From positions 310,001 to 374,000 of the forward strand of contig MU008188.1 in assembly GCA_010909165.1 (NCBI GenBank): DNA of 64,000 bases, given 5' to 3'. The first letter of the stretch is position 1, and every line of letters begins with the position of its first letter. Positions 8,226-61,537 of this stretch are shown here, in pieces. The notes under the pieces are model-generated. The model was not told the origin of the DNA. It worked only from the letters and a program-made list of their open reading frames with translations, and did no database searches. A program made the position numbers and the translations under genes. The stretch comes from Anthoceros angustus. Lineage: Eukaryota; Plantae; Anthocerotophyta.

Positions 8226-8317
8226 AAATAATTATTTTTTGAAAAAAAAAAGGTTCAACATAAATATGTATATTTCTAAAATTCAATATTTATGAAAATA
8301 TTTTTTAATCAAATTTC

Positions 8318-14193: not shown

Positions 14194-14261
14194 CCACCCA
14201 GCCCGGTAGTCCCGGACTACTGCGGTGGCGAGGACCTCTGCGTGGGTGCAGAGGCAGGCCA

Positions 14262-19926: not shown

Positions 19927-20136
19927 CCTACCACGGTAGGGGAGCAGCCTACCGCGGTAGGGGAGGTAGTCCCAAGGGTGGGAGGAATCCCCACCATTTC
20001 ATGGGTACCAGAAGGGGAGGCACCCTGTCAGCCTACCCCGGTAGGGAGGCAGACTACCGTGGTAGGGAGGCAACCTACCCCGGTAGGTAACCAGACTACT
20101 GTGGTAGAGACTCAACCTACCACGATAGGTAGGCAC
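19927..20136 (+). repeat. 21-bp-period minisatellite built on the palindrome CCTACC-NN-GGTAGG (encodes PTxVGxQ)
   Basis: Units at 19927, 19948, 20032, 20053, 20074, 20095, 20116. Related arrays at ~9045-9160, ~12660-12860, ~14133-14190, ~14620 and ~21370-21430. Confidence 0.85.
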
Positions 20137-25272: not shown

Positions 25273-28200
25273 CATGTTGCTGTTACAATGTGTGTTACAT
25301 ATTTCTGTTACGGTGCTCTGGGTTGTAACAGAAATGGCCTTGGTTGCAGGATCGGGTTTAGGGTGTTGCGATTATGTTAGGTTGTATAACATGGATGTAA
25401 CATACGATCGTCGCCCATGGTTCCATTAGTGAGCGGGCTTCCGTCCAGTGACACCCTTCAAATCGTATGTGCGCCGTATTGCACTGCAAGCCGCACATAT
25501 CCGCGGATGTCGAACGCATTTGACTCATTGGGCGGGGGCGCTAGTTCGGGTTTCATGGGCGTCGAGGTTCAGCGGCGCACACCTTCTACACCCGGCCCAC
25601 CTGGCAAAGCTAGAAAATAGCTTGTCAAATTCGTGGAAGGTGACATGGTTTCTCCGATTACAAATCGCGCCATTGTCGACATAGCTAAGGATTGGCCACA
25701 TGTGTGTTCCGATTTACAATGGTTGACGTCGCCTAAAACTAACAAACTTCCTAGCCCCCATTCACGCCTGGGTGGCCACCCCGTCAGCCGAGAGGCATGC
25801 ATCGGGCATGCCTCTCTTTCTTTCCGGTGTCTCCCTTACCGCAGGCGTCGTCGTCTCTCCTCTCAACGGCTCCCTCCACCTCCTCTCAGCGCTCCGTCGT
25901 ACTCCTTTCAACGCCGTCCTTCGCACGCTCACCCGTCATGGTCTCAACTTTGTTTCCCCATCCACTGTTCTCGTTCCTTATGCGGCGCCAACGCGTTTCA
26001 AAGTACGTTCTAATGCGGCCTCGATTCGGAGGAAGCTTGGCCAGATCGACAGCGGCGGTAGTCTCTCAAAATTGTGATGTCACGGATGGAACATTTGCCT
26101 CACACTCAAGTCTGCGCACCGGGCATCTTCACCAAGGAGCATTTGTCATAGGCATGTAGGCAATCATCGAGGAAGATGAAAATGCACATGAATGTGAAGC
26201 GCACTTGTTCTAACGACCGTAGCTGATTTTATTGCGGTGAAAACATAATCTATTACAGATGTTCAAAATGAACAGGAGACGGTGAGAGTTCGTGATCGAG
26301 TGCTTGGTGAGCAGTTGAGACCGGAGATGGGTGACCATAAGAGGAGCGGAAGGGCGTTGAGAGGAGCGACACGACGCCCGTTCTTGGGAAAAGGACGGCG
26401 GAAAGAAAGAGAAGCATGCCCGCATGCGGCCTCATGCCTCTCGGAATCGTGGCGGCTCTATGGCCGATTTGCTCCGGCTGTTCCATGACCATATACGAAT
26501 GTGTGAGGTCGTCCTTTCTTAGTGGAAATGTGTGCTCTCTTCACGGCATTGTTTTCCATCAACCATGGAGCAGTGGCGCGGATGGCGGAAGGTGCATTGT
26601 GATGTGCCACTATGCGGGCTGCCCGTGAGCAAGGCCATTTCGCAATGCACATGATTGGGATGGCATGGCTGCTCCTCATGCGTGCAGCGCGCCCAGGCTC
26701 GCAAATTGATGGCAATGGCTTGGCCCAAGGCACAACATTCCTCCAAGTTTCGTATTTGGCAATGTAGTCTCCCATAGTGAGGCTGGCCGAAATGTAGAAG
26801 CAGAACAATGTGCACAAGTGCATCCGTTTTTAAGTGATCACCTCGTCGGCTGTCTTCACATGGCACACCTTGAGCACATGCATGCAGTACCAGTTCTTCC
26901 ACTTGTCACTTGATTCCTATGTGTGGAACTCCACAGCCATTCTCACAGCGTTCATGGGTTCCACAAAATCCCCATCGGACACCGCCGCTGCGTGATGAAA
27001 CAACCGGAATAAAGCGATGGGTCCTCCCGCTAGCAGGCCGTGGTTCGTGTTCCCCCATTGTGTGGCATGCTTCCACTATGTGCTCATGACCTCCAACAAT
27101 TGGGCGGGCCTCGTCGTTTGAAATCGGCATATAACACAAATTGCTCCCATTTGTTGTAGTTGAATGGCGACTGGTGGTGAGGGAATGCATTAGCCACATC
27201 CATGTCTCTCTTGACTATCCGGCACTCACCTGTCGCGTTTCCAGCTCAAATGGCCACCATGCCGACTTGAGGCCCTCACAACATTAGTTTAGTGGGTCGT
27301 TTTGGGCCCAAAATGCCGAACCCATATCCGTTCCTCCGGTCCCCATCGCTCAATCTCGGCCGCCTCTGCCGACTCGCGTTTCCGGCAATCCTCCCGTCGT
27401 TGGGGTTCCCGTTCCCTTTAGTGCAATGGCGGGCTCGAATTCCAAACGCCACATCAAACTTCTTGGCTGTCACATTTGGGACAAACCACATCCTCTCCCT
27501 TGAGGTTTGCATGTGCACACTGCTGTACCACCCTGAGGCGGTTTGCGGACCTCGCTGCTTCGGATGATGTGGACACCCAACTCCTTGCACTCGAGGCGGG
27601 AAGTCCATGCCGAGGTGAGCAGGCAACCCACAACTCCATCTCGCCCGGCTCGTGTAGCAATACAAGCGCCCTAGGACCGTAGTTCGCAAAATTCACCTTC
27701 GCGAGGCGGGCGGGGTGCAGTGCATCGCCCTCCTCCATCACTGCGGTACCGCCCCGCCTTCTTGCCACACTCGTTGCCGTTTGACATCCTTCGCCTCCCA
27801 CCCGGGCAAGCAGGATCCCCATTTGACATGACGCCCAAGTTTGCGGACCACACCGGATGTGGCGGCTCGGCGCCATCCATTGGGACTTAGGGGGACCATG
27901 CCATCCTCGCGCCCACGGTAGCCCGACCGCATGTTCGTCGGTGCTTGGTGGAAGATGTCCTCGGGGATCCAAGTTCGATTGCCCGGACCGCCCTTCGTTT
28001 GTCTCTCAAATCTGCTATGCCGCAAAGCGGATCCATTGTTCCCGTCGCGCGCGGCTGTTCTAGCTCCGCCAGCTGCCGACGTCCGGACGTCCGTGTCGAT
28101 CACGGCATAAGGATGGTGGCCGGCGACGACGGAGTCCCTTGCTCCTCGACGCTATCGCCTGTTCCTCGGATGTTGCATCCGGATGCCTTCAAATGCTCCT

Positions 28201-29069
28201 GCCTACGCATCCATGCCACAAGCCCAATTTAGACGGCACATGGCCGGCATTGTTCGTCTTTGTGTTGTTCTTACCGTATGTCAAAGCGCCGCAGCGTTTA
28301 GGTCCCCTTCGCGTCCCCTACATGGATTGGCTTCACGGCTTTTGCACGCCATTGTGGAAGGAGGTGAAGGTGGAGGTGAAGGTGTATCGTGCTTGCCGAC
28401 GATGTGACAAAGCGGTGTTGGTGAAGCCTTCATGCGAAGAAAATCTGAGACTCCCTTTAGTCCGGACTTGTCTTGTCATTCCCTCCACTGAATGGATGAA
28501 CCATTGCTCTCTTGAATTTCATTAGATAAGGGGTTAATGAGCTAGTTCGGAGGAATGATGGAATATCACCACATGCTTGCACTCCTCGAAGCAGTTGTCG
28601 TCATTGCTATAACTGGCATTAGTATTTCGCCATTTCCACGCACAGCGACCATCCCTTCTACTTTCCGCACTCCTCCTCCTTCGTGCCCGGGGTCTCTGTC
28701 TCGCAAGCTGCGCCTTCTCAGCGGTGAAGGCGTTGTTCAATTTTCCCCGCTCATCACTTGCTCTTTGAACAGGGGCCGAATCTTCTTGGATGCCACCCAG
28801 TAGCGGTGTACATGCGATGTCCACAGCCGCATTTGCGGATCCCGGCCCATCCGCCCATTCACCCCCATTTCCGAATACATTGTTTGCGAAAGGATGGAGG
28901 GCCGCAGCGTCGGAGGCGTGACCCTTTCTCGCGATTTCCCTCCACCATTATCTTGTCTCGCTTGTAACTAATTGCCGCGAATTGATGGTCGGTGGTGAGA
29001 GCGAGCGCCAAGATCTTGGCGGAGGATAGCCGCCATAGGAGGCATTTCACATGGCATGGAGGCGACTGA

Positions 29070-31060
29070 TGGCTATGATAGCATGGATGATATGGATAGC
29101 TCGGCGTCCGTGGCGTGTCCTCGAGCGCCTCCATTGATGGTAGCCGATCGGGCGACAACAACGCACCGCAAGCTGTTACATGGAATCGATCACATGGGGA
29201 TGGAGGCCACGGTTGCCAGAAGGCGGCGGCAACGGCCCGTGGAAGTGCACCTTGCAAATCCAAGGAAAGCGGAGTTGGCCACGTTGATCCTCGTCGCAAA
29301 CCGGGCATGGCATGTCAGATGTGGCTGTATCTGACATGCTGCAGGCCGTCTCCCAACATTGTGCGGTGAGGGGGCATTGCCAACTTCACTCGAGCAGGGG
29401 AAAAAGCTTTTGGCCGCATTCGGCAGCGGGTATGATAAAATCCACGTCTGTAAAGGTGATTGCGTGTTGTTTAGAGGTGAGTACGCCGATCACACCGCAT
29501 GCCCATTGTGCGGTCTCTCGAGGTATATCCGTGGAAAAGTCCACACAAGGTCATGTGGCATTTTCCTATCAAAGACCGCATCCGAATGCATGTTACGCTC
29601 TCCTGTTACATGACAACATGGCCTTCTACACTACGTGGCGTTGATGGGCATATGGGTATCATCGGATGCGGATACGATGGCGGCTGGTTGATAGCTTGGA
29701 TGGGTTTGGGTCGGAGGCCGGGGAATGTTCGGTTTGGCATAGCGGATGGTTTCAACCCATTTGGTCACCGTCCGGCATCCACCATATGGTGTGCTATTTG
29801 TGCACAACTTCCCCATGGATGACAACAAAGCCGGAGCATGTGCTCATGCCTTATTGTGCCAGCCCTCATATTGTAAAAACTTTGATGTCTTTATGCAGCC
29901 ACTCCGGAAGAGCTGCGGGATTTGTGGGTGGAAGGCATGCACTGTCAAGATTTCTCGATGCCTGCGGATCTGGCGGGCAGCTTCAATGTTAGAACGGTTA
30001 GAGATTATCACCTTTAGGGATCATGGCGGCTGGTGGTACATGGGACGCGTGCACCTTAGGCTAGCTAGGTTTGGAATCAAGATGGGCATTGCGCTTCATA
30101 AACATGTGTGCAGGGCCGTTTCCTCCCGGTGATCATGAAATCGCGAGCGAAAAGGAGTGGTTCAACAATGAAGGAGCACCGCCCACCGGCCCCGCCGTCG
30201 TTCGTGAACTAATGGTGATATGGGTCGGGTGGCGACTTCGAGGATTTAAAATGTAAGCGGTTTGGGACACGAAGAAGTCAACGTGGTTCGACTTCCCTAC
30301 CGTCTTTGGAGGCACATCTTTGAAGTGGGCCCCGAAAGATGTCATGCACCTAGAAAAAAGATGTCAATGCTGAGTCCATATGGCATACATTGACAGGAGA
30401 ACGAGACGACTTTGCTTCACGCGTTGACATGGAATCCATAGGAGGTAAGTCATGGCTGTGGCCCAATCACGACACCGAGACTTTTCCCGATGCACGGTAT
30501 GTGTTAACTAAGCCCGATCTAGACCTTGTGCTTAAAGAAATGCGGCGGATCCGGCTACCCACCGGATATGCCTCAAACATAGCATCAAAGTTGGCAAAGG
30601 GTAAGGTTGGCTGCTGAAGACCCATGATTGGCGTGGTAATGCAAGTGTATTTCCCCATTGTCCTCCGTCAACGAATTCATCCGGATGTGTATAAGGCAAT
30701 CGCGGGGTTGGGTCGGTTGCAGTGGATATGCCAAGCGGATACGGTGCATGCAATCGCGATATGCGGAGGAATGCATAAGGGTCATGTGTATTGGAGGAAC
30801 AATTTCCAAGCTTCGGATATTTCACACACCTCGTACTTCACTTGGTTGATGAGGTGGAAGCTTTGGGCCGTGCTGCGAGATGGATGTACCCGATTAGAAC
30901 GTTATCTCGGCTTAAGCAGACAATCGGACAACGAGCCGGGCCGGCGGCGCGGAAGGATATCCAGTGCATCAACTTGGCGAAAGCATTCCGTGACATGGGA
31001 ACACCGTCATGTATTAGGGAACGGACGGGCGCCACGGAGAACGGCGTCGGTAGAGACCGT
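29070..31060 (+). pseudogene. CACTA TnpD transposase (Transposase_21 plus DUF4218-type regions), heavily frameshifted
   Basis: YDKIHVCKGDCVLFRGEYADHTACPLCGLSRY; KVMWHFPIKDRI; NVRFGIADGFNPFG; NFDVFMQPL; DVMHLEK; IRLPTGYASNI; LKTHDW; HLVLHLVDEV...RWMYP. Confidence 0.93.
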
Positions 31061-40274: not shown

Positions 40275-43200
40275 CACTACCACAGAAAAACTGGTCGAGG
40301 CCCCGAGGCGAGGCCGACTTTACGTTTGGATGGACGAGGATGACAAGGACAATGAGCCTATGGGCGGTCGAACATACCTTGAGGACGGAGCAGTGCGGGT
40401 ACACAATTATGTTTTGTACAACACGAGCGTTTTGCGGCCCTTTTGGCCTTGTATGATGCGTTTGTCCGGCAGGCTGGTCACGAAGCCATGCTTGAGAGAA
40501 TGGGTGCATGCTATGAGGGTAGGTGGAGAGTGGGACTCCCATCCTGGAATGCGATGATGCCCGCGCCATCATGGTTTGGGCCACCATGCCATATCATATA
40601 ACCACATGATGAGCAAGGAGCCCACATCCGCACAATAGCCGATGCCGTCGTCGTAGAACGCAAGAGATGCGTATTCACCCGGTTTTGTAGGGTTAGTGGC
40701 GAGGACTTGCGGAGCATTTTTATGGCCATGTAGAGGAGATTTTGCGTGTATCATTCTCGGATACATACAAGCCTATGGTATTGAAGGTTCATTTGGTATG
40801 AATGCGACACGAGGCACATCCGCCATCCTTGCGATCGACATTTTGTGTGCGACATGGTGAACATGGGACGGAGGTGCACATATCGGCCGGAAGTGAAGGC
40901 GGGCCATTCGTGCGCAGTCCAATGTATCTTTCATCCGGACCCCATATCGGTGAACCGAATTGGGCTTTAGCTATTCCTCTCCGGCTCATGGTGGAAGGAT
41001 GTGGAAACGGATGCGGTGTAGTTTTGAAGGGCATATTGGAGGAAGCCACGGCGAGCGATCTGTGAATCGACCGCGACGCCGCAACTCCGCTCAAATTACG
41101 CGCGGATGCCGCACCGCATGCTTGTTTCATTGCCGCATGCACCGCGTGTTGGCACCCATCCATACTTGTTATCGTCCTTCATGTATTGATATATCGGCCA
41201 TGCGCCTCCGCATGGTCCATCCACCACACGATCGTCTTTCCCCATATGCCGGGCGTTTGTCACGATTCCCCATCCATGACCACGGTTGGCGGCATATCCG
41301 CCATGTGCATCATCCCCATTCTAACATACATCCATAAGCGGCGAGGCATAAGGTCGGAGTTCACATGCCCGAAATAAGTAAAATATGGGGTTTACATGTG
41401 ATTTCACGTGAGCAAGGGACATTCTATTTATAATTCTACTTTCCTTGGCCTTGAATGAATAATGATATTTATGTGCTCAACCACCTATTCGCCTTTCCTT
41501 GAGTTATGACTTTTATGTATTTTCTAATATAGATCCGCTGCCTATATATGCATCATAGCACCATGCCTTACATACATAACCAAGGACATTATTGCTATTT
41601 AGCTAGTACCATGGGATGTCATTTGCTGGAAGCGGAAGCGCAGTGGCGAATGGCGGCGGCGGATGTCATGTCGCGAATATTTGGCACGCATCACGGTCGG
41701 ATGGCGGTATCATGCGCATCGGCGATCTGGTGTAACGAACAGGCATCAACGATGGAAATGCGTCCATAGTAAAGTCGGAGGCGGGGAGTGAGGAACGGCT
41801 TTCACCGCGATTCGGGCTTTCATGCGGTCCGGCCGCTCTCCATAAACGCAGAGCCCCATTGGGTTCTACCCCAAGGCCACAGTGAAGCTGATTTTGGGGA
41901 TGCTTTGGATGTGTTCGTGCTTGAGGTCGGTGGTGCTTGAGGCTATGTCGGTATTCTGTCGGTGGTTGCGGTAGTAGGAGATGGGGAGGCGGGCAGGCGG
42001 TGACTACACCGCTTTCTTGCGCGCATAGAGGGCAGTATCAAGCAAACCTAGGCGGATGCGTGGGCGCTTCCGGCCGCATCCGACTTTTCACACCATGACG
42101 CCGGATGTGGGTAGCCGGCTGCCGGCCCAGCTACGGGACGCGCACGCGTGCTTGTGGTTGGGAGGTGCTTGCTCGAAATTACGCAGCGGATGACCACCTT
42201 GCACGACCTCGGGATCGGTGAATGGTTTGACGAGCCGGTGGGCGCTTGTTTGACTTTGCGTCGAGTCGAGGCGTAATCCACCTTAGGCGGTGAGCGGGCG
42301 CCATTCCTCCCGATGGCATAGATTACATGGCGGTAGGTGGATGATTCGGTCGATGCACCTCGATATTGGCGTGAAGCGGCGTTTTGTAATGCAACGTTAA
42401 TTGCGCGTATGCCCAAAATACATATGTCGGTGTTGTAGTAAAGTGTTCCGTCTCGAATAGCATGAGAATGTGTTTGAATTAGTACAACGGGGTGGCATGT
42501 GCGTGTTGGAGTGAACATCATCCGCGAAATAATGGGGGCTCCATGATGAATCTCGCCCCCTCTGCCTCCCCTTTCCACACCTTAACAAACATGGCATCTT
42601 CAAGTTGAAGTTGCATGCGACTCAGATCGGAGGATCCCTTCAACATCAACGCGGTGTGGTGGAAATCACGCATTCAACTGCGGTGGGGATTCGACGTGAT
42701 GAGCCTGTGCATGGCACATGTATCCATGCTTACGGTGAGGTGTCAAGTGGCGATGGAGGCGGGACTCGGGCGAGGCTGGCCGTCTGTGAAGAAGGTAAGA
42801 ATTGGCCTATTCGGTGGCGCATCCCGGTGTTGTCCTTGGCCATCGCCTACAAGCGATCAGAGAAGCAGGACTCCATGCGAGCGGTAGATTTGAACATGGA
42901 AGGCCGGTGGCGGCCGTGAACTACATCATCAAGCGGAAGAGGCGCTTGACACCATCATATTGCATGTCACTGGCGAGTGTTCGGGAAGGCTCGCAAGCGG
43001 TGACACGCTTTTGTTGGCCCTCTTGGCGTCGTGGCTTCGATGTACGCACGCGGTGTTGCGGCTATGGCGATTCGGCTACCAACGCCCGGAAGATTTGGGC
43101 GGATTCGACGGAACCTGGATGATGTTCACGCGTGGAGCATCATGTGAGGTCAACGTTGGGAGAGTTGGTATGAGGAACATAGCACCCGCATGTGCCTCAT

Positions 43201-45949
43201 TCGACAAGGTGCATGCTGCACTTGTGTGGTAGGTTAGGGAGCGAGTCATGGACTATCAACGCGAGGAAAGCGCGAAAGTAGGTGGGATGGGCAGCGAGGT
43301 TCATTCCCATACCCACCTCCCCGGCCATAACGAATCCAGAGGGCAACACATACATTGTGCGGCCCTATCGGGTGGAACAAGCAGGCGACGGCCACACCTG
43401 TCGAGCCTCGGGAAGAGGTGGGAAGAGCCGCCTTCGCACAACACCTACGCCACGGCGAGAAGAAGGACTTATGCAGGCCGGTGATCAAGCCGCGGCTGCC
43501 ACCCTCGGCACCAGGTGGAGTGACAATTTTGTTGAGGGTGGTGGTGGGCGGCCTGCACAGTTCTGTGTGGGAGATTGCTTACGCCCACCGATTGTTGTGG
43601 AGAAGGTGGACAATAGGGCTTTGTTGCAAGCCATTATTCACAAGAGAGGAAAAGAATGGGTGCATAACATCATGGACGAACCGCGGATGAAGTTGAGAAG
43701 ATGAAGGCGGGGAGATCCGGGCGTCGGGGCCTCGGGGGCGAACGCCATGCGGAAATGGTGAAAATGGTGAGGCATTTAACAACAGTGGAGATGCCGGGGT
43801 TGGAAAAGTGGAAGGACGTTTGAACGGAGCGGCGTGTGTCTTGAAGTGGAGGCGCCTTCCGGCACTTGTGAAGAGAATAATCAGGAAAAATTCTCCTCCG
43901 TAACAGGCGGCCAGGCCATGGGCCGCTGCGAAGGCGCTGTGGTGGAAGAGAGGAGAACAAAGGCGTGCTAGACAACGACTTGAAGCCCCGACGGACGACA
44001 AATCATGGCAAGAAAGCGTAGTTGGGCTAGAGTTGAATTGCGCCAACATGGCAATTTCCTCCGTCCAAAGCATCTATCGCGTGAGGCGGGAAGTCGGGGA
44101 TGGGGCCCAACCTCTGGGGGAAAGGAGGCAAGCAATTTGGATGGAGAGGTTCAAGCCCCACGGCCCAGGAGGAGTGTGAGTATGGCAGTTACACCAGCAT
44201 TAGCAGAATGCAAGAGTATTGGGATGCGAAGAAGGCAGGCCAAGATATGGCAAATGTTATCACGGATGCAAGGGCAAGGAGGATGAGTGGCACAAGCAGG
44301 CATGGAATAGACTCAGTTCCGGATGAGCTGGATATGAGATCCATCCGCCGGACGACAGCGAATATGGTACAACTCCAACAGGATGTTGGCGGTGATGACG
44401 ATGTCGAAGGGGATCGCGGACCTGCAATCGGCGCCGAGGAGGTGAGAGCAAAGAACACACGGCAAGCAGCAGTCGCCGCGATGGATCCGGAAGACACGTT
44501 GGAAGAACGGAATCCGGAATCAACGGAAGAAGAAATGGTTGAGGCATGCCAGGCATATGCAGCATGGACTGAGGTGGAAGGCCACATTGCTGGAACGGGC
44601 AACATACAACGGCAGAAGGAGGTGGACATGGGCCATGACGGTAATGGTGTTCAGGAGGACCAAAGTCGCAAATCTGCGCATAACGGACGTCATGCACAAA
44701 GGTCGTCCACTACTCGTCAGAATGAGGGAAGGCGTGCACAACAAATCCCTGCGATCGGGAACAGTGCTTCTAGCGATGACGTGGAAGAGGTTCAGTCACC
44801 ACCGGCGAAGACAACTCGAAAGCGTCGGAAGGACGAAGGAAGGCCTGGAACAACACGGGAGACTCCTAGGCGATTGACGAGGGCAAGGGTGGCTGCCAAG
44901 CGAGCACGCCATCCGATCTGAGTTGTCGATGGTTGCGGCGTGCATGGGCGAATGTGTCTTTGGAGACGTGTCACGGTGACAATGGGGTGAGGCGTCTCCA
45001 TCGCACCGCGATGTCTTTGCATTCATGTGTTGGTCGGCGGACAATGGCGAGATATTGGCGAGGTGTCAATTCACTGCTTGTGTTTGCAGTTGTTGTCACA
45101 CAAACCGATGAGTCGGCGTCGCATGTTGTGTGTTGTGAAAATCGTTCTTGTTCATAAATTGGCAGGCAACCGAACAAATGGACGAAGCAGCGCAAAAGCA
45201 GAAGGAAAAGGCGTCCAATCATACGAGTGGGAAGAAATCAAAACAAAAGAGGAATCCATCTTCTCGCGGCCGTCCTTCAGAGGGGCCATCCAAGTTCGCT
45301 GCCGCAGACTTCGACTGATTGCATGTGCCCTCTAGTGCCGCTGTGCATTGCGGCAAGTAACGGAAAAAAGCTATCACAGGCAAGACTAAAAGAAGCAAAC
45401 CAATTGAGCCACGAAAGTGAAAACACGATCACTGCGGACGCTACGACCAGAGCATTGAAGAAAAGCTAGCGGATTGCACGTATACATACGTATCAGTGGG
45501 TGGATCACGTATACACCACGTGAGGTCACCGCTTATACGAATACAATTATTTTTGGCAATATACAATTTATGGGTTGCTGTAAACCCAAAAATACAAAAG
45601 ACAGGCTGCCAAACGACGGTTGGTGCAGAGTGTCCCATGTGGAAGGCATCCAATCGTACACATATGCACCGGCACATGTTTGCAATCATGCCACTGACGG
45701 TCAGTTCGCGGGAGGAGGGCGCGTGGCGAACGGGGGGGTGCCATGTGCATCCATGGTGCATCCATGGATGTGTGACGACGCCCGCGACGCGGATTGGGAC
45801 GTCGGCAAAATCAGGCCCAACGAGCATGCAAATTGGTGGTCAAGTATATGACCACCAATTATCTTGACTTTGTCGAACAAGCTATCTGTGAACGGCGGTG
45901 TGCTATCGCCCGAACCACATAAACCGACCCTCCAAACTCAACATATGAT

Positions 45950-49694: not shown

Positions 49695-52600
49695 ACTGAC
49701 CACAGCTTTGTTGCTGGGATTGTATTGCTGCTCAACGCCTCCAAATAGACCAAGGTAGTAATATTTTCTTGAAAGGAAAACTCCACTGTGCACCAAACAC
49801 AAATAACATGTTACAGAGACAGTTCTTCTCCAGCAGCACTACTCGCAAGCCACTACCCCCTTTAGAAAATAAAAGAATTGGTCGAATTCCTGCACCACGT
49901 TAAGTCTGGAAACTCAAATTTGACTGGAAGAGGCATATGTTTTCACCTTCCAATGCCGCCAATGAAGCAGAGAATAAAGAGTATGCCAAAAAGGAGCAGA
50001 ATCAGCTTGTCCAGTCTTCTCTCCAAAGTGCTCCTTTTTGAAGGAACATCCATTGCGTTCATCATAACCTGGGCATCCAGTAAATTACAATAAGAATGAC
50101 CCCTCTGCATTTATAACTGCTTACAAAGCTCCTAAATAGACACAGGCAGAACCAAGTCCCATACCTTAGTCTCGTGGCCAGCAAATACTACAGCCCCCAC
50201 AATCCAATCTGTGTTACGCAGGCTGCAACCCTGGACATGCAAGGAGCAAGTGAACCAGCAGAATACTTCGGCTAATTGACCAAATATCCTAAATTCAACA
50301 ACTCCATGCTTACTCGCAGCAGAATCTGATTGGGTGAGACTGGCAGTGTTTGCTTCCCAACAACCAGATTACCCGTGAAAGTGTACAAGGAGTTGTTTGG
50401 ATGTTCACATTCAATCCTTCCTGAGCAGACAGATAGTAATTCTCAGCCTGAATCCGAAACACGTTGGCCATCCAGAGCACAAACCCAACAAAACACTACC
50501 AGACCTGAAAATTCTGCTGCATTCTCTGCATCAATGAAATCCCAAGTTCGTTCCAAGGCCTTCCGAATCTTCAAATTTGTCTCACCGTCTAAGTTTGATG
50601 TCTGTATAGCAGGGAGAACATATACACCGGCAGTGTGAAACACACAAATCATGCATTCTTCACCAAATGCTATCCCTGCTCAGGCTCGGGATAGATAAGA
50701 GGCCGACACATCTGCACAACACCAACCAGAATATAGTACCTCAATATAGCAGATACCATCTGCATTCGTACTGGCCAGAAAGAGCAGGTCTGCAGGAAAG
50801 TAATGGTCTTGCTTCACCTGAAAAAGAGTAGACCCATCACACAGCAGAAGTCAATCAGAGGTGGTTCCCAGTACAGCATGAGAGAGAAAAGTTAACATTG
50901 CAAGGACATCGTTCAGCACCAGCGAATGAAATGCTTTTTCACTACAAGGAAAACTTAGAATGCTAACCTTTACAACGTCACCTACAGCAACCTTGCTCCA
51001 TGGTGTAGGAACCCAACGACGATCTCTTAAGACATCAACCAAGCCAGAGTTGATAACCTTGTCATTCAAATACCGCTTCTGCAAGAACAGATGCATACAA
51101 AGGAAGATATAGATGCTTCTTAGTAGCCATAATGTTCATGCCTTTGCTCAAAGGTGCCAGAAGCTCACTGGCTTTTGCCAGGATATCACAACCTTGACAT
51201 AAGACGATGTAAAGCATGACACAAGGTCCCCCTACAGCAAAGACAAAGCTTTTCACAACAGTCACGGTAGATGACTTGCCCTGTCCTCAAAACCTTCCTT
51301 TATCAGGGACACAGTTAGCACAAGCGCGAGCGGTCCAGCATTTGTAATAGGATTTACAGGACTGCAGGGCATAGATGTACCGCCTGTCAGAGCTCAGATA
51401 TTGTATAAAATTTTGCTCAAAAACATTCCCGCCAGATAGAGCCTTTGCATAGACATATTTTCAGGGCCAACAGCGGAAGTGCCAACCTTATGGGAGTTGC
51501 AGACAGAATTGCTATCAAGAGAAAGTAAAGATTTGCAACCCGTCGGAACTGCAGCGTCGGTAGCAAAACTCGGTTGTCAGCACATAACATCCCAGAATGA
51601 GACAACTGCTGCAACTCCTCACATACTGTTGAAAACCCATTTCAACACGTGAGCTATCCACACAGTCAAGGAAAATACACAGTGCACACCTGCTCAAATA
51701 ATCCTTTTGGTAGAAATGTGACCAAATTATACTTGGTTGTTGAGATGGAATTGCCCTGCAAAAGTAAAGGTGGACACCCGTCAGAATCTAAAAGCAGGAT
51801 GACACAGTAAGGCACGGTCCTTTCAGCGCCTGCAATCAGGAGGGGGATCTAGATCCGTACTACTTGACATCCAGCCCGAGCGGACCCGAGAGAGTAAGAA
51901 GCAGCAAAATTGCGGAAAAGGCGTCAATTTGGTTCCGGCAGCACGATTAGTGAGGACGAAAAGGGACGTGCTAGAATTGGAGAAAAAGATTAGAGTGGCG
52001 GTAGCCAAGGTCGGGACAAAAGAAAGGGAAGGAAACCTGGATCCGGATGGATTTCTGAGCAGAACAAAGGCACCTGGCAATCAAGTACCTTGAATCGGAA
52101 GGGGGCGTTGCTCTGCGGATTGTTGCAGTGGACCACACGGTGACCAAGATGTAGAGAATCATCAGGCGGACTGTGCATCTCGTAAAGTCGAATTCGGCCC
52201 CGGTGGCTGGGCCTTACTTTGTCCCACAGCCCCATGACTGTTGAGACCTGCTAGAGGGGACCAGGAGGTTGCGCGGGCGGGGGCTTCCCAATCCAATGTC
52301 TATACAGCAGCTGATGCATCCTGGAATGGAGTGATTTACGAGCCAGACATGGCGTGCCTCACGGATCTCGATTCCGGACGGAGTTGAAGAGGCTGCCCGA
52401 CTGTCCAGTCTACCAAGCCAACCACAAACCGCGGGAAAGAGCATACCCAGCTGCCCGCACACGGTCAAACTCCGTTCCATGCAGCTACATACATAGCAAG
52501 TACAGAACTATGTATGTATGCTACTACAAAATCTCATACAAATCAAAATACGGCAACATGGAACGATTTTGAAGAAGGATCGACGGATGTAGGAATCTGG

Positions 52601-53447
52601 ATTCCTGGAATAAATGAATAAATTCTGAATCGTTCTTACAAGTACTGACGTGAGACTTTTTTTAAATATATATTTTTGCTTATCTCATTAATAATTAATC
52701 TAAAACAAAAAAAATAGAACTTTAGGTTTATAATTTAATCCTAGGCCAGTGAAAATTGAATGATTTATAGTAAAATAAAATCTCTATCTTTTGGATTGCC
52801 TCGGAAACAGTTTTCATAACAAAGCTAACACACCTCTAATAGCTAGTTCCTATAATAAAGCTAAATCGTCATAGCATACTCCTAAATGTACGAGTTAGTA
52901 TTGTCTGGGACATCATATTCTCTACAGCTAAGAAAAGCGGGTTCTTTCCCTAAAGAGAGCGCTCATATATTCGTGCTCAATGACGTTTTTCTCAGAGTTG
53001 ATCTGTTTTTGACTCGGGCGGACTAGGTTTCTATTGCTGATGTGGTTGAAACAGACCCTACCCAGGACAGTGTCTACGAGTATGTTATCTTTAATCCTTC
53101 AATCCTCCGAGGTGGGCAGCGGAGGGATGTGCGACAACGAAGATCCACAAGTACTCTTCCATGCAAGATGGCCACGCCTTCATCCCCTTGCTCTTGCTAT
53201 TGAGACTCATTAGGCCATGGGCAAGGATTTTTGTATGCTCGTCAAGGCCTGTCCCAAGGCTTACCACTCTCACAACAATGGGTTGGTCTCCCCTTTCTTC
53301 TATTATGGCTTTCTTCAGACAACGGGTGTCCATTGCCCTAAAGAGGGTACAGAACGGCGGTAAGCGCAGGGGTTGTGGCATCTTCAGCCCCAGTGGTAGG
53401 TAGGCCTTTTCATATCCTGAACCACAAAATTCTTAGAGCAGTAGTTT

Positions 53448-53531
53448 CAAGATAAGTGATCGCAAGGGTCTAATCGTGGGGGCTAGTCCCAAGATAAGTG
53501 ATCGCAAGGGTCTAATCGTGGGGCTAGTCCC
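53448..53531 (+). repeat. ~42-bp tandem duplication
   Basis: caagataagtgatcgcaagggtctaatcgtgggg(g)ctagtcc x2. Confidence 0.92.
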
Positions 53532-53640
53532 CCTTAGCGCGATGCTTTCCCGAGGGTTGTTCCCCTTTTTTTTCGGAGTAGATAGATTTTTCCAATCTCT
53601 TTTTTCACATGAGGTCTGCCCCTCAAAATAGTAACTACAA

Positions 53641-53752
53641 CAAAGCTAAGATCTTCAGAAGCTAGTTTTCTCCATCAAAGCTAAACCTGAAAGCACCAAA
53701 GCTAAGATCTTCACAAGCTAGTTTTCTCCATCAAAGCTAAACCTGAAAGCAC
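53641..53752 (+). repeat. 56-bp tandem duplication, with a diverged third copy at ~52820-52895
   Basis: caaagctaagatcttca(g/c)aagctagttttctccatcaaagctaaacctgaaagcac x2. Confidence 0.9.
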
Positions 53753-53989
53753 GCTTCTAAATTTATGAGCGAGTTCTCTGCAACATAGCTGAAACCTTGA
53801 ATCACACTCCTAAGATGAACGTATGAACAACAAAAAGTAGGAGAAATTAACACTCTTAAATCTCACTGCTAAGATTACCCGTTCAGGGCAGCTTCAGCTA
53901 GTGCGGCATCGTCTACCGGGTCCCGCAACGTGCCGTCTTCCACTGCCATTTTGGCGACATCGACCTGGCTACCCGGGAGGCATGTCGGC

Positions 53990-55280
53990 GGGACGGGGAT
54001 CCTTCCCACTCTAAGGGTCGTAAGTCAGGTCGTACAGGGTTTTAGCGGGCGGCTGATGAAGAGCCGCCGAGGGCTGCAGATAGAGGTTGGGCTCGCCGTA
54101 GTGGCCCATGAAGGCCAGGTCGAAGGTGATGATTTGATCGGCGTGCCGCGGCCCACGCCCCGGAGGTTGAAGAGGAAGGGCTCGGGCGGGCCACGGCGCC
54201 GTCCAGGCCGACGGAACGGAGGAAGGAGACCGGCGTGCCGTCCACGTCCACGCCCTGCAGCTGCTCCACCAGCAGGCGGCGGCGCAGGAGGAAGGGCGCC
54301 CCAGCTTCTCGTACACGCGCACGTCCGCCAGGGGGTCCATGGGATCTTGCGCCTGGCCGCTGCCCTACTGTCTGCGGGATGGTGTTCGCCGGGCTCACTC
54401 AGCGCGCTCCGCGTGCTTGAGTGTCATCCGGAGGGCCTGGCTGGGGAGCGGCTCGCCGAAGTTGATGATGCGCGGGAAGCAAGACGCGGTTGATTAACGT
54501 GAATGCACCAACACAGCAGAAAGCACAAGACGGTGCAAGCTTAAGGTGCGTACCGCAGCGGGCGCAGTGGCGGCCGGTTCGGTGATCGTGCACCGTCTTC
54601 GCATAGCGAGCAACCGCTCGATAATCTGCGATGCCAGGCACACGCAGCGTAAACAGCGCATTTGCAGCTGCTGCAAGGTGCAGGTGCAGACGCAGCTGCT
54701 GTGGATTTGGAAGCATAGATAGATAGATAGCATGCCTTGCAGTGTCGTGAGACCTACCCCGGATGTACTCTTTGCCGCATTTCTGACACTGTTCGCGGTT
54801 GCACACCTGCTCAGACTTGGAGTGGCCGACGTGCACGAGCCCTGGTACTGACTGGTAAAATGCCGCTCCTCCTGTGCAGTCCATGGCAATTCTGTGACAC
54901 CAGGTACTTGAGAAGGCCTCGATTCTGAAGCTCCACCAGCGCCATGTGGACGTCGTCTTGCGTGCGCGCACTCTGCCTTGCACACGAAGCGTCCACACTC
55001 CTTTGGGGCCTCGGAAGTCGGGGATGCCTGGCAGTGCTATTCCACCTCTTTCATGAATTCATCATCTTTACCTGCCTACCATTGTCTGATGTCCAAATGT
55101 ATCCTCATTTTGGTCTAACCTGCAGATGTGGAGATGCCGGCTCCGGTGAGGCCACGATACGCTTGCTCGTCCTGATCAGGTCACCAAAAATCTCGGCTTT
55201 CCGGTCCACAGGCACCGGCGGCTCGAATCGCTCCTTCGCTTGTTCTGGTTCCTTGTGCGCCTTGTGAGCTACGGTGCTCT
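53990..55280 (-). pseudogene. Class IV (SIRT6/7-like) NAD-dependent sirtuin, fungal-type architecture, decayed by multiple short deletions
   Basis: ERFEPPVPVDRKAEIFGDLIRTSKRIVA(F)TGAGISTSAG|IPDFRGPKGVWTLR...HMALVELQNRGLLKYLVSQNCHGLHRRSGILP...NREQCQKCGKEYIR|DYRAV...HDHRTGRHCARCG...IINFGEPLP...GVDVDGTPVSFLRSV...LAFMGHYGEPNL...YDP*. GT-AG introns present. Start codon uncertain (candidate ATG at 55433). Confidence 0.9.
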
Positions 55281-55567
55281 ACAGATGGGAGCTTTGTTCA
55301 GAGTCTGGAGCTCCACAAACAGCAGCGCCTTCGCCTGCGCCTGCGCCTGAGCTCACAGGTCGTTGGCAGCCAAACCGGCCTTCACCGAAATTGAGATGAA
55401 ATCGCGGCTCCACGACAGGGTGTCAAGTGGCATGGCACACACGACGGCAACCCACGTCTGTCGGACCGGCCGTCACCGTGGAATAAAAACGACCCTCGTC
55501 ACACCTTCGACCGGACACTCGCGCACAACTTCAATGTCATATTATAAACGACCTGAACACCTACCAC

Positions 55568-58500
55568 CTACAGCTGTCGATGTTTGCGGCTGTGCCGCCT
55601 TTTCCCGACCTGTTCTCCCTTCACCCTCACCCGCTCACGCACTCTGCATCCAGCAGTGAGCAAACCTAGAGCTCCCATGACATAGAAACCCTTGTACGGG
55701 ACTAATGTCAGTCCAGCCAAATAACAACAGAAGCCTGCGCACAAGTACGCTGCGCTGAGGCCCATGTCTCTGATGCAAGTACCCATTTTAAAATATGGGA
55801 TAGCCAACATGTCGAGGGTGTTCCCATTCACACTGCTTCCGTAAAGGCCGTGAACAATCAACCCGACACTCAGAACCGAGTCAACAAGAGATGGTAATGG
55901 CCGATCCCAACCAGGCCTCTGCGTACAAACAATGACCAATCATACTCTGATGAGAAACGATCCGACCAGTTTGACTATCAGGAAAAAGGGCACCAGGACA
56001 CTACACTCAAACAGCTCACCTGTACCCATGCCACGAGGGACGGAAACATCATGGCCGTCGCACAAAGATGCAAAAGAAGCAGTCCCTGAGTATGATTGAA
56101 AAGGTCCAACTGTGTGCCGCCACAGCTGAGATCAGACTCTGCAGTTGAGCAACCATCAATACCTGCAACCCTTGGCCATGAGCTTGTTGGCACATCACCG
56201 TTAGTGGAAGCTGGCTCGTCTTTCCATTTACTCCTCTGCAGACTCCCATGATGTCTGCAGGAGCAAGCCCTGGTCACAACATTGCCCCACTCAAACAGCA
56301 CCAACAAAGAGACTAACAAACGTTGACAACGAGAAACTCTAAGTGCCATGAACCCAGGAAATGCAAGGACGACCTCGCTACTTACTCCCTACCTCAACCA
56401 GCCAGCCTCACCTCAAAAGTGACAAATGGCATCGCCACGCATGTGTTACGCACAACACAAGGAGTCCCAAAGCGGGATGCACAAACAGCACTAATACAAT
56501 AGCTAGTACAGCCACTGTTAAGGTTGGCTTTCCACGAACTTTCCTCACTACCTGGACACACAAAAGTTAGATAATACTTATGCTGCATGTACTATCAAGT
56601 TCACGGTAAGTAGAGCTGAACTAGTTCGTAAGAGCTGGGAACGTTTTGAGAGTCTGACCTGGGAAGATGAGCACAATGAGAGGCGGCCAAGTAATCTGTG
56701 GAGCCAGCGCGAATACTGACTCTCTTGCCAAGTGCACCATCTACGAGATTTACGACCCAGGGTTGGCAAGTGCAAACTGGAAGAAAGCTCATCAAAATTT
56801 GGAAGGGACCTAACAAATACCTGGCTTTCAGATGAAAATGAAGATAAGCTGAAGAGTGGAACACCACTGTTATGGCCAGAGCCAGAGCCATCATGGCTCC
56901 ACTAGCGAATGCATAACAGAGACAGGATGTCAACAGGAAACTCAACAGTTGCGGTAAACCTTGGTTTTGCAGGGTAGTGACTGTGAGGTACACTAGCAGG
57001 GGACCAAAACATAAGATCATTAATGATAATGGCCGTATGAGGTTGGACTCTAGACAAGCCAGGATGGAGGGTATTGGTTGATCTTGTTCCCATGCAAGTG
57101 CCTGGCGCATTAAGGCGAACAGCACCAGCGCAACCGCAAAACCCGAGATCTGCAGTTCAAGAAAGGAGGGCCATGACATACTTGCTTACATTGGACTTTA
57201 GTACGTAAAAAGAAGGTTGCAACAAGCTACAGAATGCACCTGTAGCCCATAAGTCAAAAAGAACCTGCCCGCAGCTGCAAGCACAGATATCTTCATACTG
57301 ATGTTGTATGCACAATGAGGATCTGCCTGCAAGCGTTTCCCCATACAGGTCAATTACCCTTCTCACAGTTTTAAGAAGCCACTAAACAATGTCACCTCCA
57401 TCACCCACCACAAAAACAATACTTGTTCCTTCCACTCCGTTCAGTGTCCAGATTGCCGGAGAGGAGTCCACAGACATAGTTTCTGAGTTCAGACTTGGAA
57501 GAACTAAAAGGCCAGAAGAAGCATCCCAGACAAGAGCAACCGGTGGAAAGCATCGCAGTTTGCAGATGTCTGGACAGAGCAGAACGAGGACCCTCGTGAG
57601 GTTTTCCAGCAGCAATGGCTACAGAGGATGACAATGTAAAAAGAGGAATTTAATTCTTGGAAAATGAGGTTCGAGGCTTACTTGAGTGATCTCCTTCAGC
57701 TTGTGGAGGTTCAGTCATACCACAGCTTGCAGTTCTCATTGAAACTGACAATGGAAACATCCCTAAGCTTGCTGCAACTGACAACTTCGTTACCAATGGA
57801 TGATTTTCTCTTAGAGTCACCTCCTGCATTAGAATCCCACTTTGCCAAATTAAGACAAGTTCTAAAGGGAACAAAAGGCTGGCTACTTTGATTCACCAAA
57901 TAATTGTGTTGTTACTGCCAGAATGCTGGAGTATCATCCAGATCAAGGAACAACATTGGATGAAGCCACCTGTATCTGCAACTAAATCCTACCCGTTGCT
58001 TGAAGAACGAAGAGACAATCCATGAGGATGAGATGGGGGCACTCCCGTCGCCGATGTTCAGGAACTGTCCAAGGGCCATAGATGCAGCAGGAGGAGGCCG
58101 TCCAGAAAGGCTCTGACCACATGCAATACCAGATGCCTCGGCTGTGAGATGCATCATCAGACCTACAGCTTCAGGATTCAAATTGAAAACAGCACTTTTG
58201 GGTCATACTGGCTGTGGGGCCACGGATATTGTGAGGTACTGAAATCCTTGAAGCTCATCAGGACTCAATCTAATAATGGCTGATGGAGGTGCTTGCTCAG
58301 ATTGCCCTCCCGGTTCAGTCTGTACAGAATGCAACCACCAATTCATAATAGCTTAACTTAGATGGGGAACAGCAAGGCTTGTGGCACTGCTGCAAGAGAA
58401 AGGTTGACTTGTGCATTCCTAAGAACATAATATCTTGCCTGAAGTGGTGCCGGCCCTGCAGGAAGCTGAACAAACTTCATCGTCACCTCCTTAATGCGAT

Positions 58501-60905
58501 GGCTTACTGCTTCTTCACCATTGCCAAGTGACACATCCCTTCCTGGCCAAAGGTGCAGCCTCACTCCGGTACATGGTGCGAGATTAGTGACCATAACAAA
58601 CCAATCTCTTCCAGCGGCGACCTGAAAACAGCAGAGAGACCGATAATTTGATGTGTACAGGCTTGATGCTGAAGATGCCTTCCCACTGACCATTTGAAAA
58701 GATTAACCAGCATGAGTCACAAGCTAGGAAAGGTTCATAGAATGTGTAACAAAATATCCCCATTGGCACATAAGTCCATCTGTAGGAACACAGTGCTATC
58801 GATAGGCACTGTTCAGCTGAAAAGACTAGGTTGACACAAATCTAGTTCACTCACCATCCTTTTGATATCCAACCACCGCCTTCTTCCATCCATTGCAAGA
58901 ATGGTAACAATTTGCGACTCAATATACAAGTCCTTCTCTTGACTTTCAACAGCCCACTGTATTGACTTCGGACAAACAAATTGTCCTTCTCCGTGAGCAT
59001 ACGCTTCTTGCATTCCTGCAGTTTCACAGCCCATCAACAGACTCATTCACAAGTACATCTTTTCCATAGGTACAAACAGGAAAATTAGAAGACCATACGT
59101 CAGCTGCAGCCTCCAGCATGCTTGTGGAACAGAAGTACGTACTATCTTTCAAGCTCTCTGCTGCAGCAGTGGAGAGTCGAAGCGCAGTTCCAGGAGGTGG
59201 CCAGTCAAATGCTTCGGCAAGAGCAGTCCGTAGCTTTGATATAAATACGTGAAGCCTTAACTGAGGGTTGGATTCAGGCTGACCCGATTTCGCATCTATC
59301 AAATGCAGAAGAGTGTGAGCAACCTGCCAGAAACGTCAGGTTCAAGAGTGGCCAATGAGAGCGTACATCTCACCTACAAATATGACAGCTAAACTGAAAG
59401 ACTAACTTATCAAAGCTAAGAAGCCACCTGAACGACAAGCTGGTTGCACCACAAAATAGACTGATGTTCTGTGGATAGCCAAACATTCAGCATCTCTGGA
59501 GCTCCAATAGTCACCCCATTTGTTGGGGGTACAATACCTTCTAAAGAGGCAAGATTGGCACGGACCTGAAACCACCAAATAGTGAAAATGAGGCGTTTGT
59601 CATCAACTCACTGCTTCTGCACACACTACAGATCCCTTCCTTGAAGCTGATCTACTAAGAACATACGAAATGCTTACAAACTACCATTTTGTCACCTGGT
59701 AGTCACGAGTTCCTCCGAATATGGACACAACGACCACTTTAGACAGTGGGCCTGATTTGACTCGCTTTGATTTCGTCCTGGATACAACGAAACCCCTCTT
59801 CCAAGCGTCATTGACACTTGAGAAAAAGAGCCCAAGCGACGGTTGCAGAGCTAGTGGAGGTGACCTGACATGAAATATAACAACTGGTCAAACAAGCCGG
59901 TCTTAAGGTGCAAAGGACTGGGACTAAACCAGGTTCACTGTTTGAGCCCTTTTACCGGTGAGGACTGGACAAGGTGAGCACGGTTTCCACCGATCCCTTC
60001 CTAAGGCGAGGATGGACAACTGCCGCCCTTGCGACAAAACCCCCCATAGAATGGCCCACCAGTATGACGGTCTTGGGAGGTCTCTCACCCAAACCAGCCT
60101 CAGCCTTGGACCGTGCAGCAAAAGATTCTTGATATCTATCCAAAATCTGTGAAAAATACCCCACATTCGACACACAGCTTGAACATTTTCCTGAGCTTTA
60201 CCCGACAAAGAGCGGAAGTTGGGGCAGGGGACACAGTAGCAAGAGCTAATACCCTGTCCACAGCTTGAACCACATACTCGGTATGCTCTTGTAAAATCCT
60301 TCCGTCCATTGCGGAATGCTCACCATCCAGATCCACGGCAAACCAGTCCAAGTGATTCGGATACGCCCTGCCATTCCGGTCGGTGAGCAAAGAATTCATC
60401 TTGCCAGCTTCTCCAGATTGCCTCCATCCTAACTCCCTCGGCGACAACGAGGATTCACGGAAAAAGCTCTCATCGAGCGGTCCGCCATTGAATGCTCGTT
60501 GCGACTCAGCGGCTATGGATCTGACCTGCTCACAGGAGCAAGCTATCTGTGAGCAAAAACTGGATCTGGCCAGTGGATTGTGCAACAAAATGCAGATCCT
60601 ACCTGTTTGTAGCTGCCACCGTTTCCAGGAATGAACAACACCGGGACGCCCGAGAGCTTGAGCAGATGCAGGTCGAAATCGATTTTTTGCCACCCCTCGT
60701 GGTACAGATAGAGACCATACTTGGTGGTGAGGTTGGCGGGAGGTGGCAGGGGGATGTACGTCGGGTACATGTAGGTCATTTTGCAGCCATTGTGCAGAGG
60801 CAGATTGGAGAGACCGAAGACAGCGGCCACCGCAAACCCGCAGGCGAGAGCGATCGCCGCCGCCCGGCATGCGCCGGCTCCTGCGCCCCGCAGGCGCCCG
60901 CCCAT
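55568..60905 (-). CDS. PGAP1: GPI inositol-deacylase (PGAP1/BST1 family), multi-exon, apparently intact
   Basis: Exon 1 60905-60603 (TM, GCKMTYMYPTY, KYGLYLYHEG, GVPVLFIPGNGGSYKQ); exon 2 60525-60253 (VRSIAAES...LDWFAVDLDGEHSAMDG); exon 3 60146-59956 with the lipase-type nucleophile motif GHSMGG and TLSSPH; later HQSILWCNQL, FVMVTNLAPC and C-terminal TM helices; stop at 55568. Confidence 0.93.
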
Positions 60906-61241
60906 CGTTCTCCACGGCAGCGCCAAGCACCCGCAGCTGGCAATGAGGTCGCAAGAATTGAAGGCAGTGACGAGCAGTGCATGCTGAACATCTCCCGCCC
61001 ACTGCGAGTTCCGCGTTACTGTGATTCGCTAAGATTAGGCGCTCTAGACAGAGGAGTTTCACACCAGAAAACGAGTCGTCTCCTCCGGCCAGGACACTTA
61101 ACTTCCCCGTTTCATAAATTCGTCTCCACTTATAAAAACGAAAGAGAAAAGGGTACATGTACGGGACACTCCCAGTAGGGACGTATGGACATCTCATCAT
61201 ATGTCTGATGCTATGCGCTGGGTCTGTCGTAGTACTACACG

Positions 61242-61537
61242 TGTATGTATGTATGTACATATGTATGTATGTATGTATGTATCTGCTGTACTGCTGTACA
61301 TATGTACAGTTGCCGAGTCTCCACAAACCAATAATGAGCTAAAAACACTGGAATATTTTGACTCCAATTCATCATCAATGGATGGATGGATGGATGGATG
61401 GACGCTGCGCCTAACCCTAATTACACAGCAAGAATGTCACGGCCTTCCGCTCCGACGTCCGGCGCTTGCTTTGGCTTGGAAGAAAAAGGCCGTGGTCATT
61501 ATGCTGCAGCAGCAGCAGCAGCAGCAACAGCAACAGC
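61242..61537. repeat. Microsatellite cluster: (TATG)n ~61242-61283, (GATG)n ~61377-61401, (CAG/CAA)n ~61507-61536
   Basis: Directly visible simple repeats in the intergenic region. Confidence 0.9.

Follow-up and report, generated by a model that had tools for sequence, protein, structure and literature searches.

A dead class IV sirtuin gene, probably derived from a filamentous ascomycete, between two host genes of the hornwort Anthoceros angustus

The DNA considered here, referred to as the window, is a stretch of 64,000 nucleotides (nt) from the hornwort Anthoceros angustus (assembly GCA_010909165.1, contig MU008188.1, positions 310,001–374,000 of the forward strand), and coordinates below are counted from its first letter. 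A three-frame reading of positions 53850–55700 revealed on the minus strand, at approximately 55281–54011, a class IV (SIRT6/7-like) sirtuin gene that is broken although of full length, hereafter the relic. A PGAP1 gene ends upstream of it and a P4-ATPase (flippase) gene begins downstream, all on this one strand (order PGAP1, relic, flippase), and much of the 3 kb that separates the two genes is taken up by the relic. As a whole, the pseudogene (54011–55281) is colinear with Pezizomycotina orthologs of about 380 amino acids (aa) from the N-terminus to near the C-terminus, its coding remnant spanning approximately 55278–54014 and its terminal stop occupying 54011–54013. A preliminary description of the locus had reported a GC-rich sirtuin at 53990–55433 between two plant genes, and most of this was borne out. 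The motifs it listed are present on the minus strand (GAGISTSAG, an intron and IPDFRGPKG; SQNCHGLH; two CxxC pairs; IINFGEPLP; FMGHYGEPNL), Pfam domains of both PGAP1 and P4-ATPase were found at the flanks, and the guanine-plus-cytosine (G+C) content of the locus is 60–74%, against ~40% just below 53880. The proposed extent stands for the sirtuin itself (~55278–54011), while positions 55300–55433, lacking sirtuin similarity, were rejected as coding.

The sirtuin blocks of the relic, all on the minus strand, are retained in colinear order: an N-terminal helix, LTGAGISTSAG, IPDFRGPKGVWTL, HMALVELQNRGLL..SQNCHGLHRRSGILP, CxxC..CGKEYIR, DYRAV..VHDHRTGRHCARCG, IINFGEPLP, VSPANTIPQTVG, the C-terminal domain and the stop. 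The N-terminal helix region (block B1, 55150–55272, ..AHK..EPPVPVDRKAE..KRIVA), recognized by ortholog alignment, is separated by a 1-nt frameshift from LTGAGISTSAG (B2, 55118–55150), which belongs to the loop binding nicotinamide adenine dinucleotide (NAD). The loop signature GAGIS(T)xxGIPDFRG is present and split by intron 1 (55028–55119; 92 nt, GT..AG, 42% G+C), inserted in phase 1 into the Gly codon between STSAG and IPDFRG. Block B3 (54945–55025, IPDFRGPKGVWTLRVQGR..KTTST) ends in the loss of about eight codons and a frameshift, and is followed by B4 (54853–54948, HMALVELQNRGLLKYLVSQNCHGLHRRSGILP), 88.6% identical to Madurella over 35 aa, in which the reading HMALVELQNRGLL..SQNCHGLH has His (codon 54883–54885) at the position of the Asp conserved in QNxDGLH. 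A phase-0 site after ..SGILP holds the remnant of intron 2 (54842–54852, GTCAGTACCAG), at 10–11 nt too short for splicing. Block B5 (54759–54842) joins a degenerate catalytic segment, where ..VGHSKS.. with four additional codons stands for ..ELHGNS.., to the first zinc pair in CxxC..CGKEYIR. Intron 3 (54626–54757; 132 nt, GT..AG), which contains a (CTAT)n run, lies in phase 1 within the Asp codon between KEYIR and DYRAV, and B6 (54552–54626, DYRAVARYAKTVHDHRTGRHCARCG) adds the second zinc pair and an insert of fungal length (Y.K.VHD); both CxxC pairs of the zinc ribbon are present (CQKC, CARC).

Beyond the ribbon, B8 (54398–54469, IINFGEPLP..KHAERAE) runs into an in-frame stop and the ..DLCLVLGSSLT segment is lost; B9 (54345–54398, VSPANTIPQTVGQRPGAR) represents part of the second half of the Rossmann fold, with the subsequent ..LAICNL.. 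strand deleted; and B10 (54311–54352, ..QDPMDPLADVRVY) precedes a further loss of about 11 codons. Blocks B11–B13 (54014–54299) encode, across three frames, the C-terminal domain of the subfamily (GVDVDGTPVSFLRSV, EPFLFNLRG, FMGHYGEPNL, TLYDLTYDP), with all four of its characteristic blocks (GVDxDGTP, EPF, FMGHYxEPNL, Y.L.Y(D/N)P) in order and a G+C content of 0.8–1.0 at third codon positions.

Lesions are found along the whole of this reading. An in-frame stop (55279–55281) replaces the start codon where Met aligns, alignment to full-length orthologs exposes at least eight frameshifts, and the internal stop after ..KHAERAE is joined by the deletions already described, the loss of about 11 codons occurring twice in the C-terminal half. 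No single frame holds a complete Rossmann fold, its GSSL and NLQxT strands being deleted, and neither an intact QNxDGLH (QNCHGLH) nor the catalytic His of ELHGN in its normal setting (VGHSKS) is preserved. The altered catalytic motifs show ancestry, not activity, and the sirtuin copy is a dead unitary pseudogene from which no enzyme can be encoded. The frameshifts are not assembly noise, since contigs built from an RNA run reproduce the window sequence within the relic, matching it across 54101–54545 and 55073–55339 with at most one indel. Contigs from a DNA run differ from the window by some 25 single-base deletions in 5.9 kb (52200–58100) where the RNA contigs agree with it, so that it is the DNA run that looks indel-prone, rather than the assembly faulty.

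Family membership was examined by searches each using one stop-free piece of the relic, and no joined spliced model, as query. A 79-aa piece matched human SIRT6 chains among solved structures (expectation value (E) 2e-7) and Pfam SIR2 (E 1e-3), and a 219-aa piece matched solved structures of SIRT7 and SIRT6. The same 219-aa piece reached E 4.7e-12 against 1.8 billion representative proteins and 1.3e-13 in a word-indexed search, and resemblance of this order greatly exceeds what chance would produce. The named organisms among the 31 significant representatives were headed by Rhexocercosporidium, Verticillium, Xylaria and Madurella, with Balamuthia, Thecamonas, a chytrid, other amoebae, Willaertia, Anaeramoeba and Paratrimastix ranking lower and no plant among them; the word-indexed search was led by Fusarium, Hypoxylon, Biscogniauxia, Camillea, Cercophora and Podospora and placed one green alga last (E 9e-4). 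A profile search with 14 diverse members in its query passed 7923 proteins at E 1e-10, and among the best 120 of these the organism-named ones were Pezizomycotina, barring the protist and nematode members of the query profile; the same 120 include a few metagenome or Logan proteins, and no plant is among the 120. An intact plant copy was not found by these protein searches, which are not exhaustive and did not address plant genomes directly. The C-terminal 117-aa piece found nothing when used as query, two metagenome scans gave either no match or just generic sirtuins sharing IPDFRGP, and literature searches brought up no paper describing a sirtuin of fungal type in a plant. A bacterial or viral origin was dropped because the introns are spliceosomal and the matches eukaryotic.

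Two observations on the wider subfamily emerged from these searches. Logan contig L001 (SRR28201142) carries at 2087–3583 an apparently intact ortholog with the same intron sites, and so do contigs L002–L005, from four further runs; this ortholog is ~65% identical to the relic, no closer than Hypoxylon, and 76% of nucleotides are shared in the block conserved best. The subfamily bearing the FMGHYxEP domain is also patchily distributed, the nematode Acrobeloides nanus (P0059) possessing one member and that of Paramoeba aestuarina (P0014) grouping beside Pezizomycotina, and other transfers or contaminations within it are possible.

Identity to the relic was pooled over 12 in-frame pieces (303 residues), each aligned separately to 155 references. 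Hypoxylon sp. FL0890 scored highest with 193/299 (64.5%), and the next ten references were also Xylariales, an order that is nearest to the relic by raw identity and whose members are common endophytes of bryophytes. Identities to Pezizomycotina ranged from 54 to 64.5%, compared with 52% for Balamuthia (the best amoebozoan), 44% for the nematode Acrobeloides and also for a chytrid, and 38% for the SRT1-type protein of the green alga Ostreobium (which begins with MSLGYA.. and has ILDWDD, as does plant SRT1). For tree building the separately aligned pieces were set as one gapped row. A quick IQ-TREE analysis under LG+C20 grouped the relic with 68 Pezizomycotina (Shimodaira–Hasegawa-like approximate likelihood-ratio test, SH-aLRT, 96), and a 57-row LG+F+G4 tree grouped it with 40 Pezizomycotina (support 96.8/81). 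The relic was also grafted on all 109 branches of a reference tree and all resulting trees were compared under LG+F+G4. The stem of Pezizomycotina was the best position (likelihood weight 0.96; resampled estimated log-likelihood (RELL) support 0.44), crown placements together received RELL 0.55, and placements beside Hypoxylon FL0890 or Fusarium were not rejected (approximately unbiased (AU) test, 0.53). All placements outside Pezizomycotina were rejected, the two nearest at AU 0.031 and the rest at 1e-3 or lower, with log-likelihood costs of 46 for Balamuthia and 119 for the green alga (AU 3e-5). Neither the closest similarity nor the placement of the relic lies with Viridiplantae of SRT1 type, as judged from this one green-lineage sequence (38% against 64.5% for Hypoxylon). 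The preliminary proposals of an affinity to filamentous ascomycetes, not to plant SRT1, and of acquisition from fungi thus agree with the best matches and with the placement in Pezizomycotina, a green alga being the only Viridiplantae comparison.

The gene structure of the relic is informative in its own right. Intron sites from five annotated fungal proteins, representing three classes (Biscogniauxia, Fusarium, Hypoxylon, Hyaloscypha and Penicillium), were mapped to their loci, and three introns proved conserved in all five, after ..STSAG (phase 1), ..SGI(L/P)P (phase 0) and ..KEYIR (phase 1), with lengths of 47–77 nt overall and 47–64 nt at the second site. The three intron sites of the relic and their phases equal those of the five Pezizomycotina genes, the second surviving only as a remnant. 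Balamuthia has three introns and the chytrid two, all at other sites, and one Cercophora gene is intronless. The shared sites and phases indicate that the introns arrived with the gene and that the transfer was of genomic DNA, and the earlier suggestion that the gene became intronated in the plant cannot be maintained, the introns standing at the three sites conserved in Pezizomycotina orthologs and in the same phases. One further interruption, of 63 nt (54489–54551, minus strand, 48% G+C) after ..CARCG, is not at a fungal intron site, lacks a terminal AG, and falls at a point where the L001 ortholog is contiguous; it is either a later insertion or a decayed extra intron.

Base composition and codon-position comparisons address the history of the gene. 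Identity between the relic and Hypoxylon at codon positions 1, 2 and 3 is 0.71, 0.79 and 0.40, respectively, and the corresponding ranges among six fungal genes are 0.70–0.83, 0.76–0.84 and 0.30–0.46, a pattern indicating that most divergence built up under purifying selection. Positions 1 and 2 carry about 5–10% more change than is seen between fungal classes, which bounds the neutral decay, so that death of the gene was probably not ancient and its decay appears fairly young. G+C at third positions is 0.77 in the relic, 0.49–0.56 in adjoining host exons and 0.49–0.73 in fungal orthologs. Along the window, G+C rises from ~0.39 to 0.66 at ~53880 and stays at 0.6–0.74 across the relic. Both flanks of the relic are likewise G+C-rich, at ~65% on the 3' side (53880–54010) and ~60% on the 5' side, between the relic and the PGAP1 transcript end (55282–55440), where there is no sirtuin similarity. 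The sharp drop below ~53880 probably represents the lower edge of a foreign insert.

Given the family of the relic, its fungal affinity, the intron sites it has in common with fungi, its lesions and its link to host genes (described below), the locus probably represents a whole fungal sirtuin gene from a filamentous ascomycete that was integrated in the plant nuclear genome and is now dead. By this account some 1.4–1.6 kb of Pezizomycotina genomic DNA, from the stem or the crown of the sampled clade, would have entered the plant nuclear genome, and on it a single class IV SIRT7-like sirtuin gene, complete and with all three of its spliceosomal introns; the piece would have landed in the PGAP1/P4-ATPase spacer, on the same strand as both neighbors, and would then have decayed to a unitary pseudogene. 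The direction of transfer would have been from fungus to plant, and the sirtuin would never, or just briefly, have been functional there. Several points weigh against this account. The third codon positions are saturated with respect to every sampled fungus, so that no close donor is known, and the top single placement in the tree is the stem, inside no order, towards which the long branch of a pseudogene may have been pulled, this being the base of the tree. The reference set included one chytrid and no Basidiomycota, Mucoromycota, yeasts or early Pezizomycotina, and with so sparse a sampling beyond Pezizomycotina a donor just outside that clade remains compatible with the data. The Viridiplantae class IV comparison consisted of the one green-alga sequence, with no land-plant SRT1. 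Finally, the two read sets (the DNA and RNA runs) stem from one sample and possibly are the data behind the assembly; since they may underlie it, linkage seen in their contigs is supportive rather than independent proof.

An older transfer, in which the gene remained long functional in hornworts and died only recently, with intact orthologs still present in other hornworts or at another locus of this genome, is unlikely. It would accommodate the signature of purifying selection (conservation at position 2 > 1 >> 3), the modest neutral decay and the low-level transcription of the region. However, divergence among fungi that preceded the transfer would explain the selection pattern just as well, the introns are exclusively fungal beside intron-dense host genes, and the third-position G+C of the relic exhibits no shift towards that of host exons. 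No protein search returned a plant protein, and the published list of genes transferred to Anthoceros angustus contains no sirtuin (PMC7027989). The codon-position and composition data fit a gene dead on arrival from an unsampled lineage as well as one that functioned for a while in hornworts; the unchanged fungal intron set amid intron-dense host genes favors the first. In the same measure we doubt that a SIRT7-like chromatin/NAD enzyme of fungal origin was once active in the hornwort lineage alongside the native SRT1 and SRT2, such that this locus would be a copy that died only recently and orthologs that are intact and expressed, fungal introns included, would survive in other hornworts or at further loci of this genome.

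The identity of the donor may be questioned along different lines. A fungus or other eukaryote outside the Pezizomycotina crown, such as an early-diverging ascomycete or a Mucoromycota symbiont of hornworts possessing the same sirtuin subfamily, would account for the preference for the stem (likelihood weight 0.96) and for the saturation of third codon positions against all sampled fungi, and would be in keeping with the unsampled fungal phyla and with a profile search of which the best 120 of 7923 matches were considered. Such a donor is nevertheless rather improbable, as the five Pezizomycotina genes have their introns at the same three sites and in the same phases, crown placements with Hypoxylon or Fusarium are not rejected, and the top raw identity belongs to Hypoxylaceae, the one chytrid being distant.

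Integration in the plant nuclear genome, which the account of a transferred ascomycete gene presupposes, was examined in independently built read contigs. A DNA contig (53723–55307) crosses the lower boundary from the A+T-rich flank into the relic, and overlapping DNA and RNA contigs (55073–55339, 55308–55605, 55438–56256 and 55675–57105) carry on into PGAP1. The relic is thus physically linked to native host genes, which lie on both sides, by contigs overlapping from 53723 to 57105, and the linkage to PGAP1 on which the preliminary description depended is upheld by this tiling from the A+T-rich flank through the relic to the PGAP1 3' exon. In the DNA run the relic is covered to a depth of 11.4, equal to that of its flanks (10–12.9). 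That DNA of an endophytic fungus was wrongly joined to plant sequence, as an assembly chimera or contamination, is therefore very unlikely. Ascomycete endophytes are common in bryophyte cultures, one sample supplied both read sets, and the sharp G+C shift at ~53880 might mark such a junction, but a living fungus would have an intact gene and not a copy whose frameshifts, deletions and collapsed intron are confirmed by RNA, and neither the contigs across the boundary nor the even depth fit an artificial joint. Vertical descent, in which an ancient class IV paralog of eukaryotes would have persisted in this plant lineage while other plants lost it, draws on the wide and patchy occurrence of the subfamily (fungi, Amoebozoa, Apusozoa, Heterolobosea, Metamonada and a nematode) and is hardly credible, with placements in any non-fungal group rejected (AU ≤ 0.031), intron sites common to Pezizomycotina only, and neither plants nor algae represented among the subfamily members seen in protein searches; retention of an ancient lineage shared with protists, raised as an alternative in the preliminary description, is disfavored because amoebozoan and other protist placements were rejected.

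Transcription across the relic is weak, at an RNA depth of 4–9 compared with ~45 for PGAP1. A low-depth RNA contig, covering 54101–54545 and about 54880 onward, lacks a 334-nt intron (54546–54879, plus strand, GT..AG) with a good polypyrimidine tract, and from this plus-strand splice it follows that at least part of the RNA signal is a spliced transcript antisense to the relic. It is treated here as a by-product and not as a function. A plus-strand AATAAA at 55483–55488 could be the poly(A) signal of this antisense transcript.

The host genes on either side are ordinary by comparison. The PGAP1 gene, on the minus strand, includes an exon encoding the PGAP1 domain (60139–61326; PF07819, E 7e-14), for which a Protein Data Bank search gave no match, and a last coding exon (55568–55918) of the same gene with its stop at 55568–55570; RNA contigs place the end of the transcript near 55438. 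The gene is intron-dense and spliced, in contrast to fungal sirtuin genes with their three introns; its RNA contigs display eight CT..AC joints between 55918 and 57992, which read as GT..AG introns on the minus strand. Downstream of the relic lies the N-terminal exon of the P4-ATPase (51420–51614, minus strand; PF16209, E 3.5e-7). The density of introns in these host genes and their short length (~80–170 nt) fit a hornwort. The A+T-rich spacer just below the relic contains two tandem duplications, at 53442–53523 (2 x 42 nt, 95% identical) and 53638–53749 (2 x 56 nt, 96%), and a related 24-nt motif recurs at 52805–52864. Capture of the relic by a transposon was considered and rejected, no flanking repeat or transposon being present except these two short tandem repeats (53442–53749); a Ty1/copia-type retroelement is 46 kb away, its open reading frames (ORFs; 5008–8292, plus strand) encoding a gag-pre-integrase domain, an integrase core and RVT_2 (E 7e-69). 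Elsewhere in the window, further G+C-rich (0.55–0.58) and strongly skewed stretches at 9000–16000, 20000–23000, 27000–30000 and 42000–45000 hold long ORFs with no Pfam match, e.g., 19009–19905 (minus strand) and 44100–44918 (plus strand). An Rfam scan of the window found no RNA family.

The relic brings no new enzyme to plant biology, and its significance lies in what it reveals about transfer. Retention of the donor gene structure, including three ascomycete introns, base composition and length, indicates a DNA-level transfer of a whole gene. Screens based on annotation count intact genes and would miss failed or expired transfers such as this one, suggesting that more fungal DNA flows into hornwort nuclei than the list of working acquired genes implies. 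The relic also offers a ready marker, as its presence or absence in the PGAP1–flippase spacer of other hornworts would date the event.

Among known sirtuins the relic most resembles the class IV proteins of Pezizomycotina annotated as 'NAD-dependent deacetylase sirtuin-7' or 'SRT1-like' (Hypoxylon sp. FL0890, P0121; Biscogniauxia, P0043; Fusarium, P0037), with which it shares the domain order as far as FMGHYxEP and a similar gene length (~1.27 kb against 1.29–1.36 kb). It departs from these orthologs in its longer introns 1 and 3, its collapsed intron 2, the 63-nt insertion and its location in a plant genome, and above all in being dead, with no start codon, a disrupted frame, an internal stop, altered motifs and the GSSL and NLQ strands lost. 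Land-plant SRT1 (Arabidopsis, rice) has in common with it the sirtuin class, GAGISTxxGIPDFRGP, QNxDGLH and the zinc ribbon. Compared with the SRT1 type, for which Ostreobium (P0060) is the only stand-in, it has IINFGE in place of ILDWDD and a C-terminal domain that the Ostreobium protein lacks. Human SIRT6 and SIRT7 provide the best solved-structure matches for the NAD loop, helical module and zinc ribbon, a similarity at the level of motifs only, and have no counterpart of the C-terminal domain in these matches. As an event, the relic is best compared with the 19 transferred genes in 14 families, five of these families from fungi, described for Anthoceros angustus (PMC7027989), a set that is richer in G+C than host genes and in which no sirtuin is mentioned. 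It agrees with the fungus-to-hornwort cases among them in type of event, host group and raised G+C, but those genes are intact, expressed and drawn from screens of annotated proteins (PMC7027989), whereas the relic is a pseudogene with donor introns. Transfer from fungus to bryophyte is thus of a known kind; what is new is a pseudogenized case in which the introns of the donor have been retained.

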